Assembly: GCF_036321535.1 (NCBI RefSeq)
Contig: NC_087447.1
Coordinates: 45,818,001-45,882,000 of the forward strand
DNA: 64,000 nt
Direction: 5' to 3'
Origin: Camelus dromedarius
Taxonomy: Eukaryota
Shown piece after piece: positions 1,781-58,815 of the stretch. The position numbers and the translations under genes were made by a program. The notes under the pieces are model-generated. The model worked only from the letters and a program-made list of their open reading frames with translations, made no database searches and was not told where the DNA came from. Each line of letters begins with the position of its first letter. Position 1 is the stretch's first letter.

Positions 1781-2722
1781 TCAACCTGGTTTCCCACATA
1801 ATTTTGTAAGGATCAGACTTCTAATCTGCTGACTCTTCACCGAGTACACAACGGGATTCATTAGAGGGGGAACCAGAAGGAAAGTATCAGCTATGACGAC
1901 CCTAATAAGTGGGGAAACACTTTTGGCAAAGTGGTGAATAATAGCCAAGGTGACAATAGGCACATAGAAGATGAGCACAGCACAGATGTGGGAGATGCAA
2001 GTGTTGAGGACTTTGAGACAGCCCTTGTGTGAGGCAATGCTCAGAACAATTTTCAGGATCAGGACATAAGACACAGAAATACACACCAAGTCTAACATAG
2101 CCATTAGAGCCACAAGTAATCCATAGATGATATTGACCCTGTTATCAGAGCAGGCCAGCTTCATGACATCCTGATGGAGGCAGTAGGAGTGGCATAGAAG
2201 GCTTTTCTTACAGAATTTTAGCCTCTTTAGAATAAAGGGGAAAGGAAAGACCAATAGGATACTTTTCACAGCAAATGCAAGGCCAACTTTCATGACTCTG
2301 GCACTGGTCAGAATGGAGGTGTATCGCAGAGGGTTGTAGATAGCTATAAAGCGATCGATGGACATGATGAGAAGAACTGATGACTCCATAGCTGAGAATC
2401 CATGAATGAAAAACTCCTGAGCAAAGCAAGCACCAGGGGAAATTCTAGTGACGTTGAACAAGAAGATTCTCAGCATGGTTGGAAGGGAGGAGATGGACAG
2501 TCCCAGATCAGAAAAGGCCAGCATGGAGAGGAAATAGTACATAGGCTCATGCAGAGAGGTCTCTGTTTCTATGAAAAAGAGGATGGTGCAGTTCCCCAAG
2601 ATGGCAATGAGGTACATGAGGCACATTGGGATAGAGACCCAAATGTGAGCATGCTCCATGCCTGGGATCCCAGTCAGGAAGAAGGTAGAGATTTCCACTT
2701 CAGAGGTGTTAAAGATGGACAT
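1781..2722 (-). CDS. Class I olfactory receptor, OR51A subfamily (OR51A7-like), intact, 313 aa
   Basis: Single-exon ORF with OR motifs GN (TM1), LHEPMYYFLSML, MSIDRFIAIYNPLRY, HSYCLHQDVMKLAC, KVLNTCISHICAV, PPLMNPVVYSVK. N-terminal NTS sequon. Splice acceptor ccattgcag|gaag (AG at 2770-2769). Confidence 0.95.
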   Translation of the reverse strand: MSIFNTSEVEISTFFLTGIPGMEHAHIWVSIPMCLMYLIAILGNCTILFFIETETSLHEPMYYFLSMLAFSDLGLSISSLPTMLRIFLFNVTRISPGACFAQEFFIHGFSAMESSVLLIMSIDRFIAIYNPLRYTSILTSARVMKVGLAFAVKSILLVFPFPFILKRLKFCKKSLLCHSYCLHQDVMKLACSDNRVNIIYGLLVALMAMLDLVCISVSYVLILKIVLSIASHKGCLKVLNTCISHICAVLIFYVPIVTLAIIHHFAKSVSPLIRVVIADTFLLVPPLMNPVVYSVKSQQIRSLILTKLCGKPG

Positions 2723-13835: not shown

Positions 13836-14777
13836 CTAAACTTTCTGTTGCTTGAATTTCTTGAGGATTCTGTCACGAATCTGCTTGGTCTTGACACTGT
13901 AGACAATGGGGTTCATGAAGGGTGGCACCAGCAAGTAAACATTAGCCATTAGCACATGGACAATTGGGGAAGCATGCTTCCCATAGCGATGGATCATCGA
14001 TAACCCAATCATTGGTGTATAGAAGGTGAGTACAGCACAAATGTGGGAGATGCAGGTATTGAGGGCTTTCATCCTCTCTGTCATGGAGGCTATACTCAAC
14101 ACTGTGCCAAGGATGAGGATATAGGAGAGGAGGAGGAGCACTGAATCAAGTCCCATGGAGCAGATGACCACCATGAGGCCATAGATGCTGCTCACTCGAC
14201 GGCTGGATACAGTTGTCTTTATAAGATCTTGGTGCAGGCAGAAGGGGTAGGAGAGAACATTGACAGGATGATATTGGAGCTTCTTTAGGAGAAAGGAAGC
14301 TGGAAAGACCAGAGCCAAAGCCCTTCCAGCAATTACCAAAGCAATCCCAATGATTACATCATTGGTTAGAATGGTTGCATAGCGCAGGGGCTCTCGAATT
14401 GCTACCAAGCGGTCAAAGGCCATGGCCAACAGCACAGCTGACTCAATAATTGAGAAAACATGAATGAAGTACATCTGGACCAGGCAAGCATTGAAGGAGA
14501 TCTCCCGGGCATGGAACCAGAAGACACCTAACATGGTAGGCAAGGTTGTAGTGGATAGGCCCAGGTCAGTAAGTGCCAGCATTGATAGAAAGTAATACAT
14601 TGGTTGGTGGAGGGAACGCTCAGTTCTGATGATAAATAGAATGGTAATGTTCCCTGCAGTGGAGGTGGCGTAAACCAAGAAGATGGGGAGGGAAATCAAG
14701 CCATATCTGCTTTCAAGGCCTGAGAGGCCTGTCAGGAGGAAGCGAGGGTATAGGGCAGAGCTATTGAAGACAGACAT
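13836..14777 (-). CDS. Class I olfactory receptor, OR51 family (probably OR51P-like by synteny), intact, 313 aa
   Basis: LHQPMYYFLSML, MAFDRLVAIREPLRY, FCLHQD, KALNTCISHICAV, PPFMNPIVYSVKTKQIR. NSS sequon. Acceptor ctcccatatag (AG at 14803-14802). Confidence 0.93.
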   Translation of the reverse strand: MSVFNSSALYPRFLLTGLSGLESRYGLISLPIFLVYATSTAGNITILFIIRTERSLHQPMYYFLSMLALTDLGLSTTTLPTMLGVFWFHAREISFNACLVQMYFIHVFSIIESAVLLAMAFDRLVAIREPLRYATILTNDVIIGIALVIAGRALALVFPASFLLKKLQYHPVNVLSYPFCLHQDLIKTTVSSRRVSSIYGLMVVICSMGLDSVLLLLSYILILGTVLSIASMTERMKALNTCISHICAVLTFYTPMIGLSMIHRYGKHASPIVHVLMANVYLLVPPFMNPIVYSVKTKQIRDRILKKFKQQKV

Positions 14778-20977: not shown

Positions 20978-21925
20978 TTAAAGCTTCCTCCTTAGTCCAA
21001 ACTTGCGGAGAATTCCTAGACGAATCTGCTTTGTCCTGACACTGTAGACAACAGGGTTCAGCAATGGGGGGAGAAGCAAGTATATGTCAGCCATGAGGAT
21101 GTGGACAATGGGAGACAAATACTTCCCAAAGCGATGGACCATTGATACCCCAATAACTGGCACAAAGAAGATGAGTACCATGCAGATATGGGATACACAT
21201 GTGTTGAGTGCCTTTAGCTGTTCTTCACGAGATGCAATGCCCAGCACAGCCTTCAGAATTAGGACATAAGAAAGAAGTATAAAGACTGAATCCACACCCA
21301 GTGTGGCAATAACTACGCACAGTCCATAAACACTGTTGATGCTGGCATCCGAGCAGGATAGTTTCAGAACATCCTGGTGCAAACAGAAGGCGTGGGAGAG
21401 GGCATTGATGTGGCAGTAGTGATACTGTCTCAGTAGCAAAGGTGTGGGCAGTACAACTCCCATGCTTCTTAGCAAGCAGGTCAAACCAATCTTGCCTATT
21501 ACACTGTTGGTGAGGATGGTGGTGTAGTGCAGTGGACGGCAGATAGCAATGAAACGGTCAAAGGCCATGGCCAGCAGCACTGAGGACTCCAGGAATGTGA
21601 ATGTATGGATGAAGAAGAGCTGAACATAGCAAACACTTGCCCGAATCTCCCGAGCATCCAAACATAACACAGCAAGCATGGTGGGAAGTGTGGACAAGGA
21701 CAAACCTAGGTCAGTTAGTGCCAAGATGGAAAGAAAGTAATACATGGGCTGCTGGAGGGAAGACTCTGTCCAAATGACAGAGAGGATGCTAACATTACCA
21801 ATAAATGCTAACAAGTATGCAAGACAGAATGGGATTGAGAGCCAGGAATGAACATACTCTAGTCCAGGAAAACCCCTCAGAATAAATATAGGCTCCATAG
21901 TATCATTGTTACTCCAGACCACCAT
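20978..21925 (-). CDS. OR51L1: Olfactory receptor 51L1, intact, 315 aa (start at MVVWSNNDTM)
   Basis: Near-collinear with recalled human OR51L1 (EPIFILRGFPGLEYVHSWLS, HTFTFLESSVLLAMAFDR, VVIATLGVDS, VRTKQIRLGIL). Same length and same position next to MMP26. An in-frame ATG also exists at 22000. Confidence 0.93.
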   Translation of the reverse strand: MVVWSNNDTMEPIFILRGFPGLEYVHSWLSIPFCLAYLLAFIGNVSILSVIWTESSLQQPMYYFLSILALTDLGLSLSTLPTMLAVLCLDAREIRASVCYVQLFFIHTFTFLESSVLLAMAFDRFIAICRPLHYTTILTNSVIGKIGLTCLLRSMGVVLPTPLLLRQYHYCHINALSHAFCLHQDVLKLSCSDASINSVYGLCVVIATLGVDSVFILLSYVLILKAVLGIASREEQLKALNTCVSHICMVLIFFVPVIGVSMVHRFGKYLSPIVHILMADIYLLLPPLLNPVVYSVRTKQIRLGILRKFGLRRKL

Positions 21926-22496
21926 GGTGACCCTTGGCAAAGAGTGAGGAATATTTTCTGTTAGCCTTTTTTGTCCCTCAGAGTCATCCCTTGTGAGCAT
22001 AAGTAGAGCAGTCAGGATACATCTTTCCTCTAATCCCGCTGAGGAAGGAAGGAGTTACAGTTCTTAGGTAAGAAACATTTCCCGGTAGTAATGAGCACCA
22101 AATTCTAGAGCAAAAGTGTGTACTACAGAAATCTGGTCATTTCTGACAAGAACTTTGATGGCTTTGCATTGAGGACACTAAAAAATTTAAGCAGCAAAAG
22201 ATTAGAGAAAGAAATCTTTACTATGTATTATAAAATTACAAACAGAGAAAAGTCAGAGTAAATGTCTCTGGATTTGCATAAGCTTCCAGCCAGTAATGTT
22301 CTTGAGTTAACCTTGATTGTTTCTAGGCTATCTTTTAATTCCTGACAACAGAATTTGTCCTAAGGACTCAACATAATTTCGCTTCCTACTTATTTAATAC
22401 TTATACATACTTATATAATAATTTATAATGTTAAAAATATTTAATATTTTAATAAAATTCAGTACCCATTATATGAAAAGAGGGCATGAAAAAGAA

Positions 22497-31439: not shown

Positions 31440-31550
31440 CATTCATTATATCATTTAGCCCTAGAAATTATTGCAATTATTTAGCAAAAGTGAAATTGAG
31501 TCAAAAAGAGGTTAAATAACTTGCCCAAAGTCTCAGAGCTAATAAGGGAT
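31440..31550. mobile_element. MIR SINE fragment
   Basis: gaaattgagtcaaaaagaggttaaataacttgcccaaagtctcagagctaataag MIR core. Confidence 0.75.
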
Positions 31551-31815
31551 AAGCCACCATCCTAAGCTGGTCTCTGTAGCTATATCTTCAACAGCATAAA
31601 CAACGTTCCGCAAACTCTACCCATGCACTAACATACTAAAAATCTATTCCTGATCTTATTTTTTTTTTCCTTTTCAGCTAATTCAAGAGTTCCATGGCAC
31701 CTCTGCTAGAATTTTCTACTTTACTATACCATTCTCTCACCCTGCTTTCAGTGACTGATTACCAAATGTTGAGACATCCAAATTGTAAGCACACAATTTC
31801 ACTTTTAAAAATAGG

Positions 31816-31821
31816 TTTATT
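31816..31821 (-). terminator. MMP26: MMP26 polyadenylation signal AATAAA
   Basis: TTTATT on the plus strand, about 160 nt past the MMP26 stop codon. Confidence 0.75.
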
Positions 31822-31981
31822 GTGATCTGGAAGTGTTCTGAATTTTGACTCAGCTGCCCTAAGTTCCATTCCTTTGGGGCTCATTCGATTGGTCTCAGAG
31901 GTGGATTTAGTGCTTTGAGTTCTTAGATCCTCCAGTGAAGCCACTGAAAGGCCAGATTGAATGATTTCTTCTGTGCCAGCA

Positions 31982-32010
31982 TTAGGGCTTTTTAGATGAA
32001 CATCTTTCTC
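31982..32010 (-). CDS. MMP26: MMP26 exon 6 coding part GERCSSKKP*
   Basis: Acceptor tccccataag|GA after a 78-nt intron; similar to recalled human GEKCSSDIP*. Confidence 0.88.
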
Positions 32011-35000
32011 CTTATGGGGACAGAAGAAAACAGTAAACTCCAAGTGGAATTTCCTGCCCAGATCCCCGCCCTTTCGGCAGGCACAGACCATAGAGTTGCT
32101 GGATTCTTTGGATATCGTCAACACCAAGGTGGAAGGTTCTAAGGTCCCGATACATGTATCTGGGGTACATTATGGAGTTCCAATTCCTGGAGTGCTGCAG
32201 GCCCAGAGAGTGACCTAGCTCATGAATGGCAACCAGGAACAGATTAAATCCTGAAAAGGAACAGACAAAAGGATAAAAATTATATATGCATAGGAAAGGC
32301 AGAAAGTCTGTAAAAAAAAAAAAAAAAAAAGGAAGAAAAAAGAGAACAGAAAAGGAAGAAAGAGCAAATGTAAGAGAGCAAAGAGAGGTGGACAGAATCT
32401 AGGTGAGAAACAAAATGGCAAATTAAAATGAACAAACTGGAAGTGAACAGAAGTTGAGAGAATGATAAATGGAAACAAAGGGATAAGAGAGAGAATGCAC
32501 AATATGATGATGTTTATCATAGAAGTATCTTTGTTCAGAAGTGATCCCACCTCCCCCCACTCATTAGAAGACCCAATTCCTCAGCTAAATCATCCCGCCT
32601 CACCCTGGCCACTCTGAATCCTGCCTTCTACCTTCTTCACAATATGCTAGGCCCAAATGGAGACCATCAATACCAACCCCCAAGCTCCCGGAGAGTTCTA
32701 GCACTCCCACCAGTTCAGGTCTTTACCTCTGTATGAAGTCGACCAGTGTTCTCCCTTGTCAAAGTGGATAGTTCCTGCAGCTCCAGAATTTGGTAAAAAG
32801 GCATGGCCTAAGACACCACCTGGCCCATCAAATGGACAACCATCTCCATGGGCTGTGAACGACAGAAACTATTGCCACAATAGGGTTTCGCGGGCAAGGG
32901 CAGGAATGGTCTTAGGTAAGCCTCAGTGCCTCAGTGCCTCATGCACGCTGCAACTGCTACTGCTGGAGAGGTGAGAGGGCTGAGGCACCATCTATGTAGA
33001 AAAATAGGATGGGGCCAAAAATCTAGCTACTCCCTATCTTCTGTGGCAAAAAAAAAAGAAAAGAAAGGTGGAAGAGACTGAGTGAAGGTTGTATGTTAAA
33101 CACAAAGATCTCTTCCCAAAATGGAGGAAAAGAGGGGAAGGGAACTTAGGCACTGCAGGCTTTCATAAATAGGTTTGATCAACTCAGTAGAATTTCAACA
33201 GATTTGAGAGCCACACAACTCTCTTTTGACAGGAGAATGTGCAATAGGCTTTCCCTCACTTTATTCACACAACAGTGCATCCTCCAGTCCCCTATCTACT
33301 ACCTCATTGTTCCAAAAATATCTTTCCTGGTATAGGTTTATTGATTTCCATTAGGGTTTTGCCTTCCTTTTTTCTCAGCAGCTAGATTAGGCGGACTAGG
33401 TTTTTGTTTCAGAACTGAGACCATTTGCCTTTTACATGGGACACCATACCCTCCCTCCCATGTTATTTTCTAACCCAGCTCCCAGAAAGAAATCTTGATG
33501 TCTGCATCTTCACTCTCCACTTGCTGGAAGATCAAGGGGGTCACATTGCTCCAAATGGAAACTGCATCATGTATAATGTTTTTCACTGTGGATTGCTTCA
33601 GATCATTTGGGTAATTGATAATCCTGAAAGAAGAAATCTTTAAGTAGAACAGCTCAAAGGTATAGGAATAATCCAGCTCTAAAAAGGCATGACTCTGCTT
33701 TGGAGAAAATCACTTAATACTTTGGGGCCTTATTTTACTATCCGAAAAGAGAATAAACCCCAGACAAACTGAATCAAAAGCCCAGGAAATTAAACCTGCA
33801 AAATACAGATGTTTAAGAATTTTTACAAATTCTCCACATTGTTCTTATCTACACTAAGTCCTGAGAATGACAGCCCTATAGGGTAATTGTGAGGAAAAAA
33901 ATCATGATGGACTCCATTGAAATGTATGGCATTTCATATAGTTTAGTATTGCTTTGTTTTGGCTATCCCTAATAGCCAAAATGCTTAGGATCCCCAGTAG
34001 AATAAGTAACATGGATGTGGAGCAAAAATACATCAAATTATATCTTAACACCCCCCTCCCCCTCCCCACCCCCACCACTTACACACAGGGGGATAAAAGT
34101 ATGTTTAGTTAAGGGAAGAATGATAGGTTCACAGCCAAAGAATAGTAGTTAGGCTCCACTTCCAAAAGAGATGATCTGGGGAAGCTAGAATGAGAACTGA
34201 GAGAATTGCCTTTTCTGAGGAAGACTGGGGCTTTGGAGAGACTGCCAGCGAAAGCAGAAGACAGTAGAGGTGCCTCCAGGAGGGACATTGCAGGCAGTCA
34301 CCCCGCTCATCCCTCCAGGCCGTAACCACAAGCACCTGTAGGTCAGAGTGTGCTTATTCCATTTAGAACTTGCTGCAGAGGCGGAGTCGTGATCAACATC
34401 AGTAACTCCACAGCGGGGCTGGTGTAGCACAGTCAGCGTTTGCTCCTCCCTCAGGTTTGCCTCGTTCAGATGGAACTGCGGCAGGAGCTGTATCTTTTCC
34501 CCCTGGGTAAGGAGTGATGGTTCTTTCTTGGTCAAGAAAAACTGATGGAAATAGTCCTGGGTGGAAGATTGGGAATGAGGAGTACTTAGAGACAGCAAGG
34601 ACAGACTCACAGCATCAGTAGCCCAGGCATAGCCTCCTTTGAAGGCCTGGGAAGGATGGTGCTTTGTCTCTCTGGTCTTCTTAAATGTCTTATTCTCAGC
34701 TGAATGATGGCAATGATGCCCGATTCTCCTGTCACTCAGTAGGTAACATTAAACATGGGTGATAAAATTAAAATGGCCTGGATAACCCATTAAAACTTCT
34801 CTGAAAATAAAGCATTAAATTTTCAGAACAGAGAGGCCCAAAGGCAAAGGTTGTCAGGGTAGGGAAAAACTACCCCCCTCCCCATCTTGAGTTCCTATCG
34901 CTGGACTAATAATAAAATTAACACGAGACAGATTAACAGGAGAAAAAGAAATACATTCTAGTTCATGCACATGGGGTCCCATAGAAATGGAACTTAAGAA

Positions 35001-36608
35001 GTGGCCAAAGCAGGCAGCTTTTATACTTCTCAGACAAAGAAATGATATATTTGGGAGGAATTGACAGGACAAAGAAACTTAGGTTTGGGTGCCCAACTGG
35101 TGAAGAATCTAAACAGAGTTTGGGCTTGGGGTAGTAAAGTTAAAAAGTAACAGCGTTTGTTTATCTAGGACTCTTGGCCTGGATTCCCTCTTTGGTGGTA
35201 AGGGTGTCCTTCTACCTCCAGATACAGGGAGCGCACCTTTTATATGAGAGATTTATTTCCTGCTTTCAGGGAGACAGAAAGGAAGATCAGGGTGTCCCTC
35301 TTGGGTCGGCCATTTCTTAAGCAACTTTAATTCAAAATAATCATTGTGCCATTGAGGCACATTTTGGGACAGTCCATTCTGGGCTCCAGAAAGGTCATGA
35401 AGGTATAGATGGGAATTGCTCAGGGAAAATGACCTCTGATCTTTCTCATCGATTGAAGTTTTCTCAGTCAGGACAGAATCTATGACTCCTAGGATATAGA
35501 ATTTAGCTGCTTCTGTATACTCAGTCCATTTGCATTTACATATCAATTCCATTAAAATACTTCTAAAAATCTCATTCTTCACCTACTCCCTGTCCACACT
35601 GACTTTCTTAACAATCCAGTGAACTAAACTTCAACCTCCAGGGCAGGGAGTGAAGGTGGGGAGGCACATTGTATTATAGTAACTCTTTCTATATCTTTAT
35701 TTGAACTCTAGCTGGGCTGAAAGTACTTTAAGGGCATTGCTCATGTCTAATGAAATTTGGTCTATACTACAATTCTTATAAATCATACTTGATCTTTGAT
35801 TGATATTTGAGATTGATTGATTTTTGAGTTTTGTATAAAATTGCATTCTTATTATACCTTTAGTCTATTGTGACCTTGGCTGGGCACTCAGAGGCACATG
35901 ATTTACCAAATTTTTCTAGGTTAGATATTAGCAGGAAATTTTACCAGGTCCCTGAATGATCATAAAGCAGATGACTGAAACCAGTTATAAAGAGTTTTAG
36001 GTGTTTTGAATGCTAGAAAGTTTTGGAACAAATGCAGTTTCTTGAGGAATTTGAAAGTGTTTGGTAGACAGGTTTAAGAGATTTCTCAGTCAATAGGAAA
36101 AACACATCAGTCCATTTGAATCACTTCCCCAGATCCCTCACCACCTAGTAGGCTCAGAGATCCAAACCTCTGAGTGTACACTTTGCCATATGGAATAATA
36201 GAAGAGTGAGACATGAACATTTGCACTGAATTATTCATTAGGTACCATAAGCAAAATTTATTGAACTCTTACCTGGAAGAGTAATTTGTATAAGCACCAT
36301 TCTTTTACCAGCCCCCACAAATGATTTCATTTATTTTAAAATCAGAAGAAAAGAAATGAACTTAGAGATTGAAGAGAATGATTTACTATGAAACAGTAAA
36401 TATATTTGTCTTTATACCATGAAGCAATGTGTATACATATAACACACATCTGGGAGAAGAACCCACCATAGTCATAATGTGATAATGCGGTCCTGATTAA
36501 CCCACCTACCTTAGCAAAGTCCAGTCCTTTAAGGTCTGTAGCAGGGGGCACTGGGAAGGCAAGGCACCATGGCAGGAAAATTGTAGCTTTGAAGATGTCA
36601 GGCTGCAT
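31982..36608 (-). CDS. MMP26: Matrix metalloproteinase-26 (matrilysin-2/endometase), six coding exons, intact, 261 aa
   Basis: Exons 36608-36510 (99), 34556-34336 (221), 33623-33475 (149), 32852-32727 (126), 32250-32089 (162), 32010-31982 (29) = 786 nt, all GT-AG, phases compatible, no stop. Signal peptide, PRCGVTD switch, [11 protein letters not shown] zinc motif, SIMYP Met-turn, no hemopexin domain. Collinear with recalled human MMP26 ([26 protein letters not shown], ...LYGE.CSS). Confidence 0.97.
32089..32250 (-). CDS. MMP26: MMP26 exon 5 (catalytic zinc motif and Met-turn)
   Basis: [54 protein letters not shown]; acceptor ccttttcag|GA; donor G|GTCTGT. Confidence 0.97.
32727..32852 (-). 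CDS. MMP26: MMP26 exon 4 [42 protein letters not shown]
   Basis: Acceptor ttcacag|CC; donor G|GTAAAG; structural Zn/Ca ligands H158, D160, H173, H186, D165, E191. Confidence 0.96.
33475..33623 (-). CDS. MMP26: MMP26 exon 3 [49 protein letters not shown]
   Basis: Acceptor ctttcag|G; donor G|GTTAGA; 149 nt, the usual MMP exon-3 size. Confidence 0.96.
34336..34556 (-). CDS. MMP26: MMP26 exon 2 (propeptide, cysteine switch PRCGVTD)
   Basis: Acceptor ttccacccag|GAC; donor AG|GTGCTT; DYFHQFF...[10 protein letters not shown]. Confidence 0.96.
34852..35391 (-). mobile_element. Solo ERV1-type LTR (family-C related) in MMP26 intron 1, sense to MMP26
   Basis: Perfect 4-bp TSD aggt (34848-34851 and 35392-35395). 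TATAAAA on minus at 35019-35025. 3' end homologous to the LTR at 27523-28067. Confidence 0.85.
36510..36608 (-). CDS. MMP26: MMP26 coding exon 1 (signal peptide) [33 protein letters not shown]
   Basis: Kozak gccATG; donor AAG|GTAGGT. Confidence 0.93.
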
Positions 36609-36665
36609 GGCAAAGCTCATTTCTCCCCAGCCTGAATTCATGTACCAAGCATGGATCAGCAGGAC

Positions 36666-36806
36666 TTTATAGCCATGCCAGCAATGCCCAGTGACTCACA
36701 CTGCCAGTTTCTCCTTTCTTTGCATTGGTTCTTGCCGTCACTGCCCATTCTGGGTTGAACGCAGAGCCAGCCTGCCAGAGTGATGCCAGCAGCCATGGGA
36801 TTTATT
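36666..36806 (-). promoter_or_regulatory. MMP26: MMP26 proximal promoter: TATAAA (36666-36671), AP-1 TGAGTCA (36692-36698), CCAAT (36724-36728), upstream AATAAA (36801-36806)
   Basis: Motifs read directly. TATA lies about 60 nt upstream of the ATG with AP-1 20 nt further, the standard inducible-MMP layout. Confidence 0.85.
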
Positions 36807-37254
36807 TTCACCTCCATTTCACACCTGACAGCCCTCAGGACACATGGCCATAACCTTGGTTAAGGAAATACTGGAATATCTCAGATTATAGGGGATATTA
36901 TTCTTTAAAAATAGAGGGGGGAAAAAAAAGAAACAGGAGACATAGGAACAATTTATTAAAGCTTTATCTGATATAATTTCTTTACTAGTCACCGACAAAT
37001 ATCTTGCTCCAGAAGCTAAAAAGAGAAGTTGAGGAAGGGAATAGCATCCCCTGTAGTGAAGACTCAGGTCATAATATGAAAAAAAATCTCTGAGACCCAC
37101 CTAGGAGAGAGAGGAACCCACAGAAAGAGAAAGTTGCTGTGTTTGAGAATGTTTGAGAAAATACATCATTGATAATAAATTGAGAGAGACACAGAGATAA
37201 GCATACACACCCATAAGGTTTGAGCTGATAACCTTTGAAATCACAGGTACGGGT

Positions 37255-47300: not shown

Positions 47301-47962
47301 TCTTAGGTCAAACAAATAGAAAATACATGATAGATAGACTTAGACAGACAGACAGACAGACAGATAATTATGAGATGCAGTGTAAAAACATATAACTGTG
47401 TGGTGAAATTGAATCCAGAAAAAATGACCAGGTATTTTTGAGAGGCAGAAAAGAAGATTTGAGAAAAGAAAACTAAAACCCATTTTTACATGAGAAGACA
47501 TTGTTTGAAAATACATTACTTATCTCTGAATTTTATGTAAAGTCATTGAACTTTTAATGAAATTCTTAACAGTACAAAAATAATTGTATTTACACAAGAA
47601 AAACAAAACTTTCAAATTCTTCAATTGGAAAATAGCACTTGTATAATTGTCTAGTTGAACCATTGGCCCTTGTTTTGAAGTTGTGTCTTTTATAATCCAT
47701 GTGTTGTTAAGTTTCAATTTTAATATCAATTTGTTTTCTTTTTCTCTCAGTTTTCATTTTTAGTTGAATATTGCTATCTACCTCTGTACCTATCTATTTT
47801 TCTCCATTTAGATTTGTACCTAAGAATTATGTGAACATCACTTGGATTCACAAGACCTCAATGATTGTAATAGGATAGAGTCAGTCATTTGAGTGAGTCT
47901 CTTTTCACCATTGCAGGAAGCCTCTCCTGAACGTCTCATGTTGATTTCCTTGTATACCTGGC

Positions 47963-50900
47963 ATATCCACCTTCAACACCTCTGAAATTGGTGTCTCTGC
48001 CTTCTTCCTCATTGGGATCCCAGGGATGGAGTCTGCCACCATTTGGGTCTCCATCCCCATTTGCCTTATGTACCTTGTTGCCATCCTGGGGAACTGCCCC
48101 ATCCTCATTTTCATAAAAATGGAGCCTTCTCGGCATGAACCCATGAACTATTTTCTCTCCATGTTGGCTCTCTCTGACTTGGGACTGTCCCTCTCCTCTC
48201 TCCCTACCATGCTTAGAATATTCTTATTCAGTGCTCCGGGAATTTCCTCTGATGCCTGTATTGCCCAAGAGTTTTTCATTCATGGATTCCCAGCTATGGA
48301 ATCATCAGTACTTCTCATCATGTTTTTTGATCACTTTATTACCATCTGCAATCCTCTGAGATACACCTCCATCCTAACCAGTGCCAGAGTCATGAAAATA
48401 GGGCTTACTTTTTCTCTCAAAAATATTTTATTGATCCTTCCTTTTCCTTTAACTTTAAGACATCCAAGATACTGTAAGAAGAACCTCCTTACAAGGTTAA
48501 TGTCATCTATGGCTTATTTGTAGCTCTCACAGGCATCCTAGACTTCACATTTATTTTCATGTCCTACATGCTGATACTTACAGCCATGTTGAGCATAGGA
48601 TCACAGAGGGAAAGACTCAAGGTCCTCAATATATGTGTTTCCCACATCTGTGCTGTGCTTATCATCTATGTTCCCATTATCTCCTTAGCTGTCATCTACC
48701 TGTTTTCCAAACACAGTTCCCAAGTCATGAGGATCCTCATGGCTGATGTTTTCCTGCTGGTACCGCCATTGATGAACCCCATTGTATACTGTGTGAAGAG
48801 CCAGCAGATAAGAAATCTGGTTTTACCTCCCTACAAATAAAAGTCCAGGACCAGATGGCTTCACCGGGGAATTCTACCAAACATACAAACAAGAACTCGT
48901 CCTTCTCAAACTCTTCCAGAAGATTGAAAAAGAGGGAATACTCCCAAACTCATTCTATGAAGCCACCATCACCCTGATACCAGAACCAGGCAAAGATANN
49001 NNNNNNNNNNNNNNNNNNNNNNNNNNNNNNNNNNNNNNNNNNNNNNNNNNNNNNNNNNNNNNNNNNNNNNNNNNNNNNNNNNNNNNNNNNNNNNNNNNNN
49101 NNNNNNNNNNNNNNNNNNNNNNNNNNNNNNNNNNNNNNNNNNNNNNNNNNNNNNNNNNNNNNNNNNNNNNNNNNNNNNNNNNNNNNNNNNNNNNNNNNNN
49201 NNNNNNNNNNNNNNNNNNNNNNNNNNNNNNNNNNNNNNNNNNNNNNNNNNNNNNNNNNNNNNNNNNNNNNNNNNNNNNNNNNNNNNNNNNNNNNNNNNNN
49301 NNNNNNNNNNNNNNNNNNNNNNNNNNNNNNNNNNNNNNNNNNNNNNNNNNNNNNNNNNNNNTGGTGAAAAACTCAAAAGCTTCCCACTAAAATCTGGGAC
49401 AAGACAAGGATGCCCACTATCACCACTCCTATTCGACATAGTCTTGGAAGTCTTAGCCACAGCAATCAGGCAAAAGAGAGAAATAAAAGGGATCCGAATT
49501 GGAAAAAAAGTGTAAAAGTGTCGCTATATGCTGACAATATGTTACCATACATAGAAAACCCTAAAAGGTCCACACAAAAACTACTAGAGCTGATCAAAGA
49601 ATTCAGCAAGGTAGCAGGTTACAAGATTATCGTACAAAAATCAGTTGCATTTCTTTACACTAACGATGAATCAACAGAAAAAGAAAGTAAAGAAATAATC
49701 CCCTTTAAAATAGCACCCAAAGTAATAAAATATCTAGGAATAAATCTAACCCAGGAGGTGAAAAAATTATACACNNNNNNNNNNNNNNNNNNNNNNNNNN
49801 NNNNNNNNNNNNNNNNNNNNNNNNNNNNNNNNNNNNNNNNNNNNNNNNNNNNNNNNNNNNNNNNNNNNNNNNNNNNNNNNNNNNNNNNNNNNNNNNNNNN
49901 NNNNNNNNNNNNNNNNNNNNNNNNNNNNNNNNNNNNTTTCACAGAACTAGAACAAATCATAATAAAATTTATATGGAACCATCAAAGACCTAGAATTGCC
50001 AAAGCATTACTGAAGAGAAAGAAAGAGGCTGGAGGAATAACTCTCCCAGACTTCAGACAATACTATGGAGCTACAGTCATCAAGACAGCATGGTATTGGT
50101 ACAAAAACATATAGACCAATGAAACAGAATAGAGAGCCCAGAAATGAACCCACAAACTTTTGGTCAACTAATCTTCGACAAAGGAGGCAAGAATATACAA
50201 TGGAATAAAGACAGCCTCTTCAGCAAATTGTGTTGGGAAAACTGGACAGCAGCCTGTAAAACAATGAAGCTAGAACACTCCCTTACACCATACACAAAAA
50301 TAAACTCAAAATGGATCAAAGACTTAAACATAAGACAAGATACAATAAACCTCCTAGAAGAAAATATTGGCAAAACATTATCTGACATACATCTCAAAAA
50401 TGTTCTCCTAGAACAGTCTACTCAAGCAATAGAAATAAAAGCAAGAATAAACAAATGGGACCTAATGAAACTTACAAGCTTCTGCACAGCAAAGGAAACC
50501 ATAAGTAAAACAAAATGACAACCTACGGAGTGGGAGAAAGTTTTTGCTAATGAAACCGACAAAGGCTTGATCTCCAGAATGTATAAGCAGCTCTTATGAC
50601 TTAATAAGAAACAACCNNNNNNNNNNNNNNNNNNNNNNNNNNNNNNNNNNNNNNNNNNNNNNNNNNNNNNNNNNNNNNNNNNNNNNNNNNNNNNNNNNNN
50701 NNNNNNNNNNNNNNNNNNNNNNNNNNNNNNNNNNNNNNNNNNNNNNNNNNNNNNNNNNNNNNNNNNNNNNNNNNNNNNNNNNNNNNNNNNNNNNNNNNNN
50801 NNNNNNNNNNNNNNNNNNNNNNNNNNNNNNNNNNNNNNNNNNNNNNNNNNNNNNNNNNNNNNNNNNNNNNNNNNNNNNNNNNNNNNNNNNNNNNNNNNNN

Positions 50901-51607
50901 NNNNNNNNNNNNNNNNNNNNNNNTTACCATGCAACCCAGGAATCCCACTCCTGGGCATATATCCAGAAGGAACACCACTTCAGGANNNNNNNNNNNNNNN
51001 NNNNNNNNNNNNNNNNNNNNNNNNNNNNNNNNNNNNNNNNNNNNNNNNNNNNNNNNNNNNNNNNNNNNNNNNNNNNNNNNNNNNNNNNNNNNNNNNNNNN
51101 NNNNNNNNNNNNNNNNNNNNNNNNNNNNNNNNNNNNNNNNCATTTGCAGCAACATGGATGCTCCTGGAGAATGTCATTCTAAGTGAAGTAAGCCAGAAAG
51201 AGAAAGAAAAATACCATATGAGATCGCTCATATGTGGAATCTAAAACAAACAAAAAACACACAAACAAAGCATAAATGCAAAACAGAAATAAACTCATAG
51301 ACATAGAATACAAACTTGTGGTTGGCAAGGGGGCGGAGGGTGGGAAGGGATAGACTAGGATTACAAAACTGTAGAATAGATAAACAAGATTATACTGTAT
51401 AGCACAGGGAAATATTCATAAGATCTTATGGTAGCTTTCGGAGAAGAAAATGTGACAATGAATATATATATGTTCATGTATAACTGAAAAATTGTGCTCT
51501 ACACTTGAATTTGATACAACATTGTAAAATGATTATAAATCAGTAAAAAATGTTTAAAAAAAAAAAGAAATCTGGTTTTAGAGAAGCTGTGTCAAAAATA
51601 CAGCTGA
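47963..51607 (+). pseudogene. OR51A-subfamily pseudogene (start ATG>ATA, about 52-nt frameshift deletion at 48490/48491, split by L1; last codons at 51581-51607)
   Basis: ISTFNTSEIGVSAFFLIGIPGME...KKNLL|[missing xHSYCLHQDVMKLACSD]|KVNVIYGL...[11 protein letters not shown] [L1] EKLCQKYS*. Acceptor ccattgcag|gaag at 47916. Confidence 0.93.
48826..51564 (+). mobile_element. 5'-truncated young L1 (ORF2 RT to 3'UTR, poly-A) with perfect 16-bp TSD
   Basis: TSD aagaaatctggtttta at 48810-48825 and 51565-51580. Begins [18 protein letters not shown]; includes [20 protein letters not shown]. Carries stops and frameshifts (e.g. TGA at 50516-50518). Confidence 0.95.
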
Positions 51608-56900: not shown

Positions 56901-57870
56901 GACAAATGCAATAACTTCTGGGATTTTATACTAAAATCCTTCTACTTTCAAATATCCACTCTCTGGTAAGTACTCAGATATCTTCATCTATTTTGCTTTC
57001 ATTTTACTGCTTTTTTTTTTTTTTTTTTTGTAAATCAACCACATGGAACTTCATACAGAGCAGGAGACACTTCCAAAATTCATGTATCTAGGAAAATTGT
57101 TCCTTTCAGAGACTATACAAATAAACTATTTACCTTTAGGGGAATTGTTCTTCAACAGAATTCAAATTCTCCTAAATTGTGACACTTACCACTTCAGGTT
57201 ATTGTTCTCTTGTCAGCACTCCACAAATGGTCACAAATTCCAGGCCAGGAGAAAATTAGACATAATTTGTCAGTAATCTCTGCAGTGACTGCCCTTACAA
57301 ATACAAAAATAATTTGAAAATCAAGGGAGTTTTTAAAAGATACTTAAATAACCAACAATCTAGCAGGGGATAGCACTAAGAGTAGTTTGGTTTTGAGAAG
57401 ACCATACTTTTGTGAGAATTCCAACAAGTAGGAAGAAATTAAATTTTGAGACTCCTCTGCCTTCACATAGTGTCATTCTGGAAATCATATATTCTAACCA
57501 ACATCTTATCTAGAATGTGAAAGCAAGAACTCATAGAGGAGTCCGGATTAATTGACTAGGGTCTACTAGTATGTTACTAGTAGAAAAAGAAACCAGCTTT
57601 TCATCTGATTGCAAAATATATTCCTGGTTTCTCTATAGGAAAAAAATGGCCAGAAGAACTTCTTTAAATCTATGATCCAGGAAATTCCAGTCTAAAGTGA
57701 AAGCCACTTCTCACTATATAGTCACATAAATAACTTGCTCTATCAAAAGACAGTTGAAAAAACCCAGAAACTTCAGAACTGCTTTTTTTCTACTAAATTT
57801 CCAGATATTCACATTTTATCTACTCAAGACTTCCTGTGATTCGCTGCAGAGCCCTCTAAATTAATTGATC

Positions 57871-58815
57871 ATGTCCATTATCAACATGTCACATGTTGAA
57901 ATCACCACATTCTTCTTGGTTGGGATGCCAAGGCTGGAATATGCACACATCTGGATCTCTATTCCTGTCTGCAGCATGTACCTTGTTGCTATTCTGGGAA
58001 ACTGCACCATCCTTTTCATCATCAAGACAGAACCCTCACTGCACGAACCCATGTACTATTTCCTTTCCATGTTGGCCCTGTCTGACATGGGCTTGTCCTT
58101 TTCCTCTCTTCCCACTATGTTGAGGATCTTCTTATTCAAGGCTTCTGAAATCTCTGCTAATGCCTGCTTTGCCCAGGAATTCTTCATCCATGGATTCACA
58201 GCACTGGAGTCCTCAGTGCTCCTGATCATGTCATTTGACCGCTTCCTCGCCATCCACAACCCTCTGAGATACAGCTCCATTCTTAAAACAGTCAGAGTTG
58301 CCCAGATAGGAGTGGTATGCTTTTTCAAGAGCTTCCTCCTGGTTCTTCCTTTCCCCTTCACTTTGAGAAGGTTGAAATATTGTAAGAAAAGCCAATTATC
58401 CCATTCCTACTGTCTCCACCAGGATGTCATGAAGTTGGCCTGCTCTGACAACCGAATTGATGTCATTTATGGCTTTTTGGGGGCACTCTGCCTTATGGTA
58501 GATTTTATGCTCATTGCTGTATCTTACATCCTGATCCTCAAGACTGTGCTGGGAAAAAACGCATCCCAAAAGGAGCAGCTCAAGGCCCTCAATACTTGTG
58601 TTTCACACATCTGTGCAGTGACCATCTTCTACCTGCCCATCATCAACCTCGCCATTGTCCATCGCTTTGCCCGGCATGTCTCTCCCCTCTTCAATTTTCT
58701 TATGGCAAATGTTCTTCTACTTGTGCCTCCACTGATGAATCCCATTGTGTACTGTGTGAAAACTAGGCAGATTAGAGTAAGAGTGGTAGCAAAATTATGT
58801 CAGAAGCAAATATAA
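57871..58815 (+). CDS. OR51A4: Olfactory receptor OR51A4/OR51A2-like, intact, 314 aa from the second ATG (316 aa from 57865)
   Basis: MSIINMSHVEITTFFLVGMP, LHEPMYYFLSML, MSFDRFLAIHNPLRY, SDNRIDVIYGF.GALCLMVDF, HRFARHVSPL closely track recalled human OR51A4/A2. Acceptor cgctgcag at 57849. Confidence 0.92.
   Translation: MSIINMSHVEITTFFLVGMPRLEYAHIWISIPVCSMYLVAILGNCTILFIIKTEPSLHEPMYYFLSMLALSDMGLSFSSLPTMLRIFLFKASEISANACFAQEFFIHGFTALESSVLLIMSFDRFLAIHNPLRYSSILKTVRVAQIGVVCFFKSFLLVLPFPFTLRRLKYCKKSQLSHSYCLHQDVMKLACSDNRIDVIYGFLGALCLMVDFMLIAVSYILILKTVLGKNASQKEQLKALNTCVSHICAVTIFYLPIINLAIVHRFARHVSPLFNFLMANVLLLVPPLMNPIVYCVKTRQIRVRVVAKLCQKQI

Follow-up and report, generated by a model that had tools for sequence, protein, structure and literature searches.

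The dromedary MMP26 gene

The 64,000-nt stretch of Camelus dromedarius DNA analysed here (the window; assembly GCF_036321535.1, contig NC_087447.1, positions 45,818,001 to 45,882,000 of the forward strand) holds the gene for MMP26 in a neighbourhood of olfactory receptor (OR) genes (Table 1). MMP26, also called matrilysin-2 or endometase, is the smallest matrix metalloproteinase (MMP) and consists of nothing more than a signal peptide, a propeptide that carries a cysteine switch, and a zinc catalytic domain. The gene was found intact on the minus strand, where six exons, separated by five introns that are all GT-AG, join into a 786-nt open reading frame (ORF) for a protein of 261 amino acids, made up of 261 codons and a TAA stop codon at 31984-31982. 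Exon limits were set by exact string search in the minus-strand translation of positions 31500-37100, after which the exons were joined. A previous reading of the window, made from the letters without database searches (the sequence-only reading), had described the same six GT-AG exons, ORF and protein length; every detail that we checked proved accurate, and the observation of an intact dromedary MMP26 in the window is confirmed.

Table 1 Features of the window; positions count from its first nucleotide.
Feature	Position	Strand	Remarks
AATAAA polyadenylation signal	31816..31821	-	161 nt downstream of the stop codon
MMP26 exon 6, 29 nt	31982..32010	-	C-terminal ERCSSKKP and TAA stop; same C-terminus in XP_010988966.3
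MMP26 exon 5, 162 nt	32089..32250	-	Zinc-binding motif at 32224-32192, and Met-turn; PF00413 positions 106-158 of 159, E=5.3e-19
MMP26 exon 4, 126 nt	32727..32852	-	Structural zinc and calcium ligands (H158, D160, H173, H186), Cys162; PF00413 positions 61-99 of 159
MMP26 exon 3, 149 nt	33475..33623	-	Start of catalytic domain; PF00413 positions 11-57 of 159, E=1.5e-10
MMP26 exon 2, 221 nt	34336..34556	-	Propeptide with cysteine switch PRCGVTD at 34418-34398
MMP26 exon 1, 99 nt	36510..36608	-	ATG at 36608; putative signal peptide and start of propeptide; GT donor follows
Two further ATGs ahead of the start codon	36641-36639 and 36620-36618	-	In frame only in camelids
TATA box, TATAAAG	36666..36671	-	About 58 nt upstream of the ATG; invariant in 8/8 species
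AP-1 consensus, TGAGTCA	36692..36698	-	About 20 nt farther upstream than the TATA box; kept in 7/8 species
Intact OR ORF, Pfam 7tm_4	1781-2722	-	Class I
Intact OR ORF, Pfam 7tm_4	13836-14777	-	Class I
Intact OR ORF, Pfam 7tm_4	20978-22000	-	Class I
Intact OR ORF, Pfam 7tm_4	57865-58815	+	Class I
OR pseudogene, frameshifted	~47960-48830	+	ORF of N-terminal half at 48026-48523, 74% identical to the OR at 1781-2722

The spliced product is identical at 261 of 261 residues to RefSeq XP_010988966.3, "matrix metalloproteinase-26 [Camelus dromedarius]", which excludes a chance assembly of the ORF. The gene is thus already known: it is annotated in RefSeq and belongs to a family that is widespread in placental mammals. 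This agrees with the sequence-only reading, which had taken the DNA for that of a probable camelid with a complete MMP26 and had guessed that automated annotation might already list it. The gene span of 4627 nt is also present in GCA_036321535.1 CM070321.1, where the window is identical over 24.6 kb outside masked N runs. RefSeq holds other models of the gene as well; Camelus isoform X1 (288 amino acids) reads through the exon 5 donor, as do some other RefSeq isoforms.

For comparison across species, the camel exons were mapped in alpaca, horse, arctic fox, armadillo, pangolin, elephant, a bat and two further Camelus assemblies. Exons 1-5 agree in length, phase and AG/GT sites across these loci and are translated without stop codons in all ten; length changes are confined to exon 2, where they stay in frame (+3 nt for armadillo and elephant, -9 nt for the bat). 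The AG acceptor and GT donor of exon 2 are kept in eight placental lineages, and exon 1 of alpaca and of both other Camelus assemblies matches the dromedary one at 100% identity. At exon 6, the acceptor is GG or AA rather than AG in armadillo (locus L005, 6430-6460) and elephant (locus L008, 6674-6704), and the annotated proteins of these species end differently, so the Cys-containing C-terminal tail is not universal in MMP26. Within camelids, four assemblies have the start codon, stop codon, ten splice sites, TATA box and AP-1 site all intact. We looked for disabling alleles in sister species and found none, the three other camelid assemblies all carrying an intact MMP26.

Orthology of the camel gene

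A search with a stop-free stretch containing exon 2, of which only the exon was scored, returned proteins named MMP-26 from alpaca, donkey, rhinoceros, armadillo, sloth and orang-utan, and in the protein search XP_010988966.3 belongs to the alpaca cluster. With the full-length protein as query, the matches bearing the name MMP26 were 56-75% identical (full-length entries, 62-75%) and came from Carnivora (fox, dog, fur seal, sea lion, mink), Chiroptera, Pholidota, Perissodactyla (horses, rhinoceros), Afrotheria (dugong, elephants, golden mole, tenrec), Xenarthra and Lagomorpha, along with strepsirrhine, tarsier, New World and Old World primates. One protein of the Tasmanian devil also bears this name, at 46% identity, while MMP7 and other MMPs are at most 46% identical to camel MMP26. 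In a likelihood tree, placental MMP26 proteins form a clade apart from other MMPs, with a Shimodaira-Hasegawa-like approximate likelihood ratio test (SH-aLRT) support of 99. This clade mirrors the species tree, its three subclades corresponding to Atlantogenata, Euarchontoglires and Laurasiatheria, with the camelids in the last.

The premise that MMP26 is restricted to primates, on which the sequence-only reading had drawn, is therefore outdated, since annotated orthologues occur in at least eight non-primate placental orders and form one clade. A survey published in 2007, when only the human, chimpanzee and macaque sequences were known, stated that MMP26 probably arose in primates (PMC1867822). 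The accompanying premise that mouse and rat have no MMP26 is consistent with our data, no rodent MMP26 being present among the search matches.

Human MMP26 resembles the camel protein in its minimal domain organisation, its length of 261 amino acids, its zinc-binding and Met-turn motifs and its C-terminal G-E-K/R-C-S-S; the two are about 68% identical, and the human gene likewise lies among class I OR genes and has TATA and AP-1 promoter elements. The proteins differ at the cysteine switch, which reads PHCGVPD in human, chimpanzee and gorilla, with a His, whereas camel PRCGVTD retains the ancestral Arg and has Thr in place of Pro; human MMP26 also has Trp where the camel protein has Cys162. 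In the protein alignment, PRCG is found in macaque, colobines, camelids, equids and xenarthrans, and orang-utan has LCCGVPD. This distribution indicates that Arg is the ancestral residue of the switch and that the human-type His is a great-ape novelty, the change in the switch being confined to great apes. Horse MMP26, also laurasiatherian, is 71-73% identical to the camel protein and shares the PRCGVT switch and the exon structure; there is direct evidence of its expression (PMC6855469, PMC7835857), whereas our literature search found none for camel.

Selection on the coding sequence

Selection was analysed with exon 6 excluded, since armadillo and elephant do not share its acceptor. The ratio of nonsynonymous to synonymous substitution rates (dN/dS, or omega), estimated by the Nei-Gojobori method (NG86), was 0.29-0.58 between dromedary and six distant orthologues and 0.25-0.55 in four other pairs, with all bootstrap intervals below 1 in both sets. 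A GY+F3X4 codon model on eight lineages gave an omega of 0.62 with a log-likelihood (lnL) of -3436.53; fixing omega at 1 gave a best lnL of -3448.70 across a kappa profile, so that omega = 1 is rejected (2*delta lnL = 24.3). On the camelid stem, changes were polarised by the other six species, giving ~22 nonsynonymous changes over 439 sites and ~16 synonymous changes over 125 sites (ratio 0.37, Fisher p = 0.004), counts that are approximate, as the codon filter favours conserved positions.

At closer range, the comparison of dromedary with alpaca shows differences at 6 of 786 coding sites (0.76%) versus 119 of 3822 aligned intron sites (3.11%; p = 5e-5), and two other Camelus assemblies show 2 and 1 changes in the coding sequence relative to dromedary, all synonymous. 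Purifying selection had been proposed in the sequence-only reading, with a dN/dS near 1 named beforehand as part of a refuting result. Instead, dN/dS lies below 1 everywhere, the codon model rejects omega = 1 and exons diverge less than introns. These sequence comparisons support purifying selection on MMP26 that is moderate rather than strong, both in camelids and across placentals.

Protein features and predicted structure

The Pfam family Peptidase_M10 (PF00413) matches exons 3, 4 and 5 colinearly, each match being above the gathering score (Table 1). These are the three exons with any Pfam match, and Peptidase_M10 is the best match in all of them, exon 5 having additional weak, sub-threshold matches to related metallopeptidase families. 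A hydrophobic stretch at residues 8-18 marks a putative signal peptide at the N-terminus. The cysteine switch PRCGVTD occupies residues 80-86, with Cys82 and Gly83 invariant and Pro85 replaced by Thr as in horse and rhinoceros. The zinc-binding motif HExxHxxGxxH lies at residues 208-218 and is followed by the Met-turn SIMYP at 224-228. In an alignment of 28 MMPs, H208, E209, H212, H218 and M226 are invariant, as are Cys82 and the structural-zinc ligands H158, D160, H173 and H186, bearing out the cysteine switch, zinc ligands and Met-turn that the sequence-only reading had listed. The architecture is minimal, with no linker or hemopexin domain, the 261-residue chain ending 9 residues past the last helix of the catalytic domain.

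An AlphaFold model built from the 28-sequence alignment has block-mean predicted local distance difference test (pLDDT) values of 67-97, mostly above 85, in the catalytic domain; the propeptide is modelled poorly. The predicted catalytic domain superposes on those of MMP-12, MMP-13 and MMP-3 with TM-scores of ~0.9 and root-mean-square deviations of 1.2-1.5 Å, and the best full-length Foldseek match is pro-MMP-3 (1slm). No MMP26 structure was found among the PDB matches from sequence and Foldseek searches.

Eight derived residues are common to camelids at sites whose conservation in other species is at least 80%. Cys162 was seen in camelids alone; other species have W, F or L at this position.

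Promoter, start codons and polyadenylation signal

The TATA box and the AP-1 site (Table 1) were scored in aligned 200-nt regions preceding the ATG from eight placental species, in which a further block, CCAATGCAAAGA, is conserved farther upstream than the AP-1 site. AP-1 and Tcf-4 have been reported as drivers of the human MMP26 promoter (PMC7608139). At the other end of the gene, the AATAAA downstream of the stop codon is the sole AATAAA/ATTAAA on the minus strand between 31400 and 31990. With TATAAA, TGAGTCA and AATAAA all located, the promoter and poly(A) signal attributed to the gene by the sequence-only reading are in place.

Single-base length differences from other mammals bring the two additional ATGs upstream of the start codon into frame in camelids alone, and the protein could in fact begin 4 or 11 residues earlier than in the 261-residue model. 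RefSeq versions of the protein have alternated between 272-residue and 261-residue models. The 272-residue ones, which include earlier versions of the dromedary entry and C. ferus isoform X2, start at 36641, and nothing differs between XP_010988966.3 and our product. From the position of the TATA box, transcription is predicted to start near 36641-36646. With such a start, the mRNA may well include the ATG at 36620, which would lengthen the signal peptide by four residues.

Expression and proposed function

Fourteen sequencing runs labelled as RNA, several of them also labelled as reproductive-system samples, contain 6-27% of the k-mers of the locus. For the reproductive-system runs the share is 11-27%, many of them containing intron 1 equally. 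Runs X8 and X10-X14 hold 6-11% of the locus and fall below the listing threshold for intron 1, a pattern that fits mRNA but is only suggestive. Our literature search found no study of MMP26 in camel or alpaca tissue; a paper on cetacean MMPs takes in the dromedary, with nothing specific on MMP26 (PMC12143041). In the mare, by comparison, MMP26 is the 12th most abundant transcript of the endometrium and the 68th of the chorioallantois in mid to late gestation (PMC6855469), and the horse protein has been detected in uterine-lavage vesicles (PMC7835857). In the human uterus, MMP26 marks a glandular epithelial population (10.1101/2024.03.07.583985).

By analogy with these species, an endometrial role of MMP26 in camel seems reasonable. 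The gene would be transcribed from its conserved TATA/AP-1 promoter and the product secreted as a latent proenzyme, in which Cys82 would cap the catalytic zinc coordinated by H208, H212 and H218. Loss of the propeptide would then activate the enzyme, with E209 acting as the catalytic base. Its site of action, judging from human and horse, may be the glandular or luminal epithelium of the uterus.

Weighing of alternative explanations

Taken together, we consider it highly probable that the gene in the window is the dromedary orthologue of MMP26, intact, vertically inherited from the placental ancestor, under moderate purifying selection and functional-looking. Several observations weigh against this interpretation. 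The RefSeq entry is a computational model (XP_), and the constraint is moderate only, with omega at about 0.4-0.6. In camelid proteins, several sites conserved elsewhere have derived residues (P85T in the switch, P182A, V184T and P235L), and Cys162 stands where most orthologues have Trp. Furthermore, eight RNA-labelled runs, X1, X2, X3, X5, X6, X7 and X9 among them, contain intron 1 in about the proportion found for the entire locus, so their signal is not exon-enriched and is unreadable as mature mRNA; these runs look like unspliced or genomic material. In the best RNA runs, setting k-mer shares of locus and intron 1 side by side thus gave no evidence of splicing. One alternative is that the gene is disused in camelids, as a recently silenced unitary pseudogene that has an intact ORF and has not yet gained disabling mutations. 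In its favour, the k-mer comparison provides no proof of a spliced transcript, omega is moderate, several camelid-specific substitutions lie at conserved sites, and no other cetartiodactyl MMP26 is present among annotated proteins, hinting that the gene is dispensable in the order. However, exon divergence between dromedary and alpaca is four times lower than intron divergence, dN/dS on the camelid stem is 0.37, all differences among the three Camelus assemblies compared are synonymous, and the coding, splice and promoter signals are intact in all four camelid assemblies, which together make silencing very unlikely.

A second alternative is a gene that is expressed but has shifted in function in camelids, through altered latency or redox control, for which the non-canonical PRCGVTD switch and an extra, unpaired Cys162 beside the structural zinc site are candidates. 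Cys162 is indeed confined to camelids, whereas Thr85 is shared with horse and rhinoceros, and the human switch PHCGVPDGSD has been described as unique (PMC7608139), showing that the switch region varies between MMP26 lineages. Yet Cys82, E209 and all metal ligands are invariant, the position of Cys162 varies among other orthologues too, and omega, below 1 throughout, gives no sign of positive selection, so we regard a shift of this kind as unlikely. A question of identity is raised by MMP7 (matrilysin), the only other secreted MMP that consists of just a propeptide and a catalytic domain and one that has the same fold, since a misnamed MMP7-like paralogue would share with MMP26 its similar length and the lack of a hemopexin domain; matrilysin chains are also the closest minimal-domain match in a sequence search of the PDB, just below pro-MMP-3 and pro-MMP-10. 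MMP7 is, however, only ~42-46% identical to camel MMP26, and other MMPs are no closer, versus the 62-75% of full-length placental MMP26; it falls in a separate clade, the camel protein being placed inside the MMP26 clade with its SH-aLRT support of 99; and it is located in the MMP cluster at 11q22 and not among OR genes, where camel MMP26 lies as in primates. On tree and synteny we reject the paralogue reading, which is effectively refuted, and retain the identification of the gene as MMP26.

Distribution in Cetartiodactyla and significance

No ruminant, pig, hippopotamus or whale MMP26 is present among the 85 strong matches of a protein search across 5.8 billion clusters, though the genomes of these animals are well annotated. 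Camelids, every other sampled laurasiatherian order, afrotherians and xenarthrans are represented in the same search. It is conceivable from these matches, and we propose it tentatively, that camelids are the only lineage of Cetartiodactyla keeping MMP26, the gene having been lost after the camelid split. If so, camelids versus ruminants or pigs would offer a natural contrast for studying a uterine role, given the very high expression in mare endometrium.

The finding is real but ordinary, and its value lies mainly in correcting the statement that MMP26 is primate-restricted: it is an ancestral placental gene, possibly a therian one, and a functional laurasiatherian MMP26 in reproductive epithelium has already been published for the horse (PMC6855469, PMC7835857). 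A practical point is that, with the mouse lacking the gene, large domestic animals that retain MMP26 (horse, camel, dog, rabbit) are available as non-primate models.

Olfactory receptor genes around MMP26

The four intact OR ORFs of the window (Table 1) match 7tm_4 with E-values down to 1e-119 and are 48-55% identical to primate OR51L1-like proteins; the two that start at positions 1781 and 57865 share 69% identity. In the OR pseudogene, the frame shifts near 48493 and ~18 residues are missing. With this frameshifted copy included, identity to primate OR51L1-like proteins is 42-55%, so there is no OR51L1 orthologue among the ORs of the window. The ORF at 20978-22000, downstream of MMP26, was considered as a candidate OR51L1 orthologue and rejected, being only 53% identical to the primate OR51L1-like protein. 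Class I OR genes and an OR pseudogene do surround MMP26, as the sequence-only reading had claimed, but its label of an OR51 cluster holds at the family level only.

The primate cluster of MMP26 proteins at 90% identity also holds proteins named OR51L1-like and a 589-residue prediction in which MMP26 exons 1-5 are joined to an OR51L1-like ORF. Such fusion predictions are read-through or mis-joined gene models, and they place MMP26 next to an OR51L1-like gene in primates too. Elsewhere in the window, an ORF at 49410-50114 on the plus strand, broken by masked N runs at 48999-51140, resembles by eye part of the reverse transcriptase of a long interspersed nuclear element (LINE).

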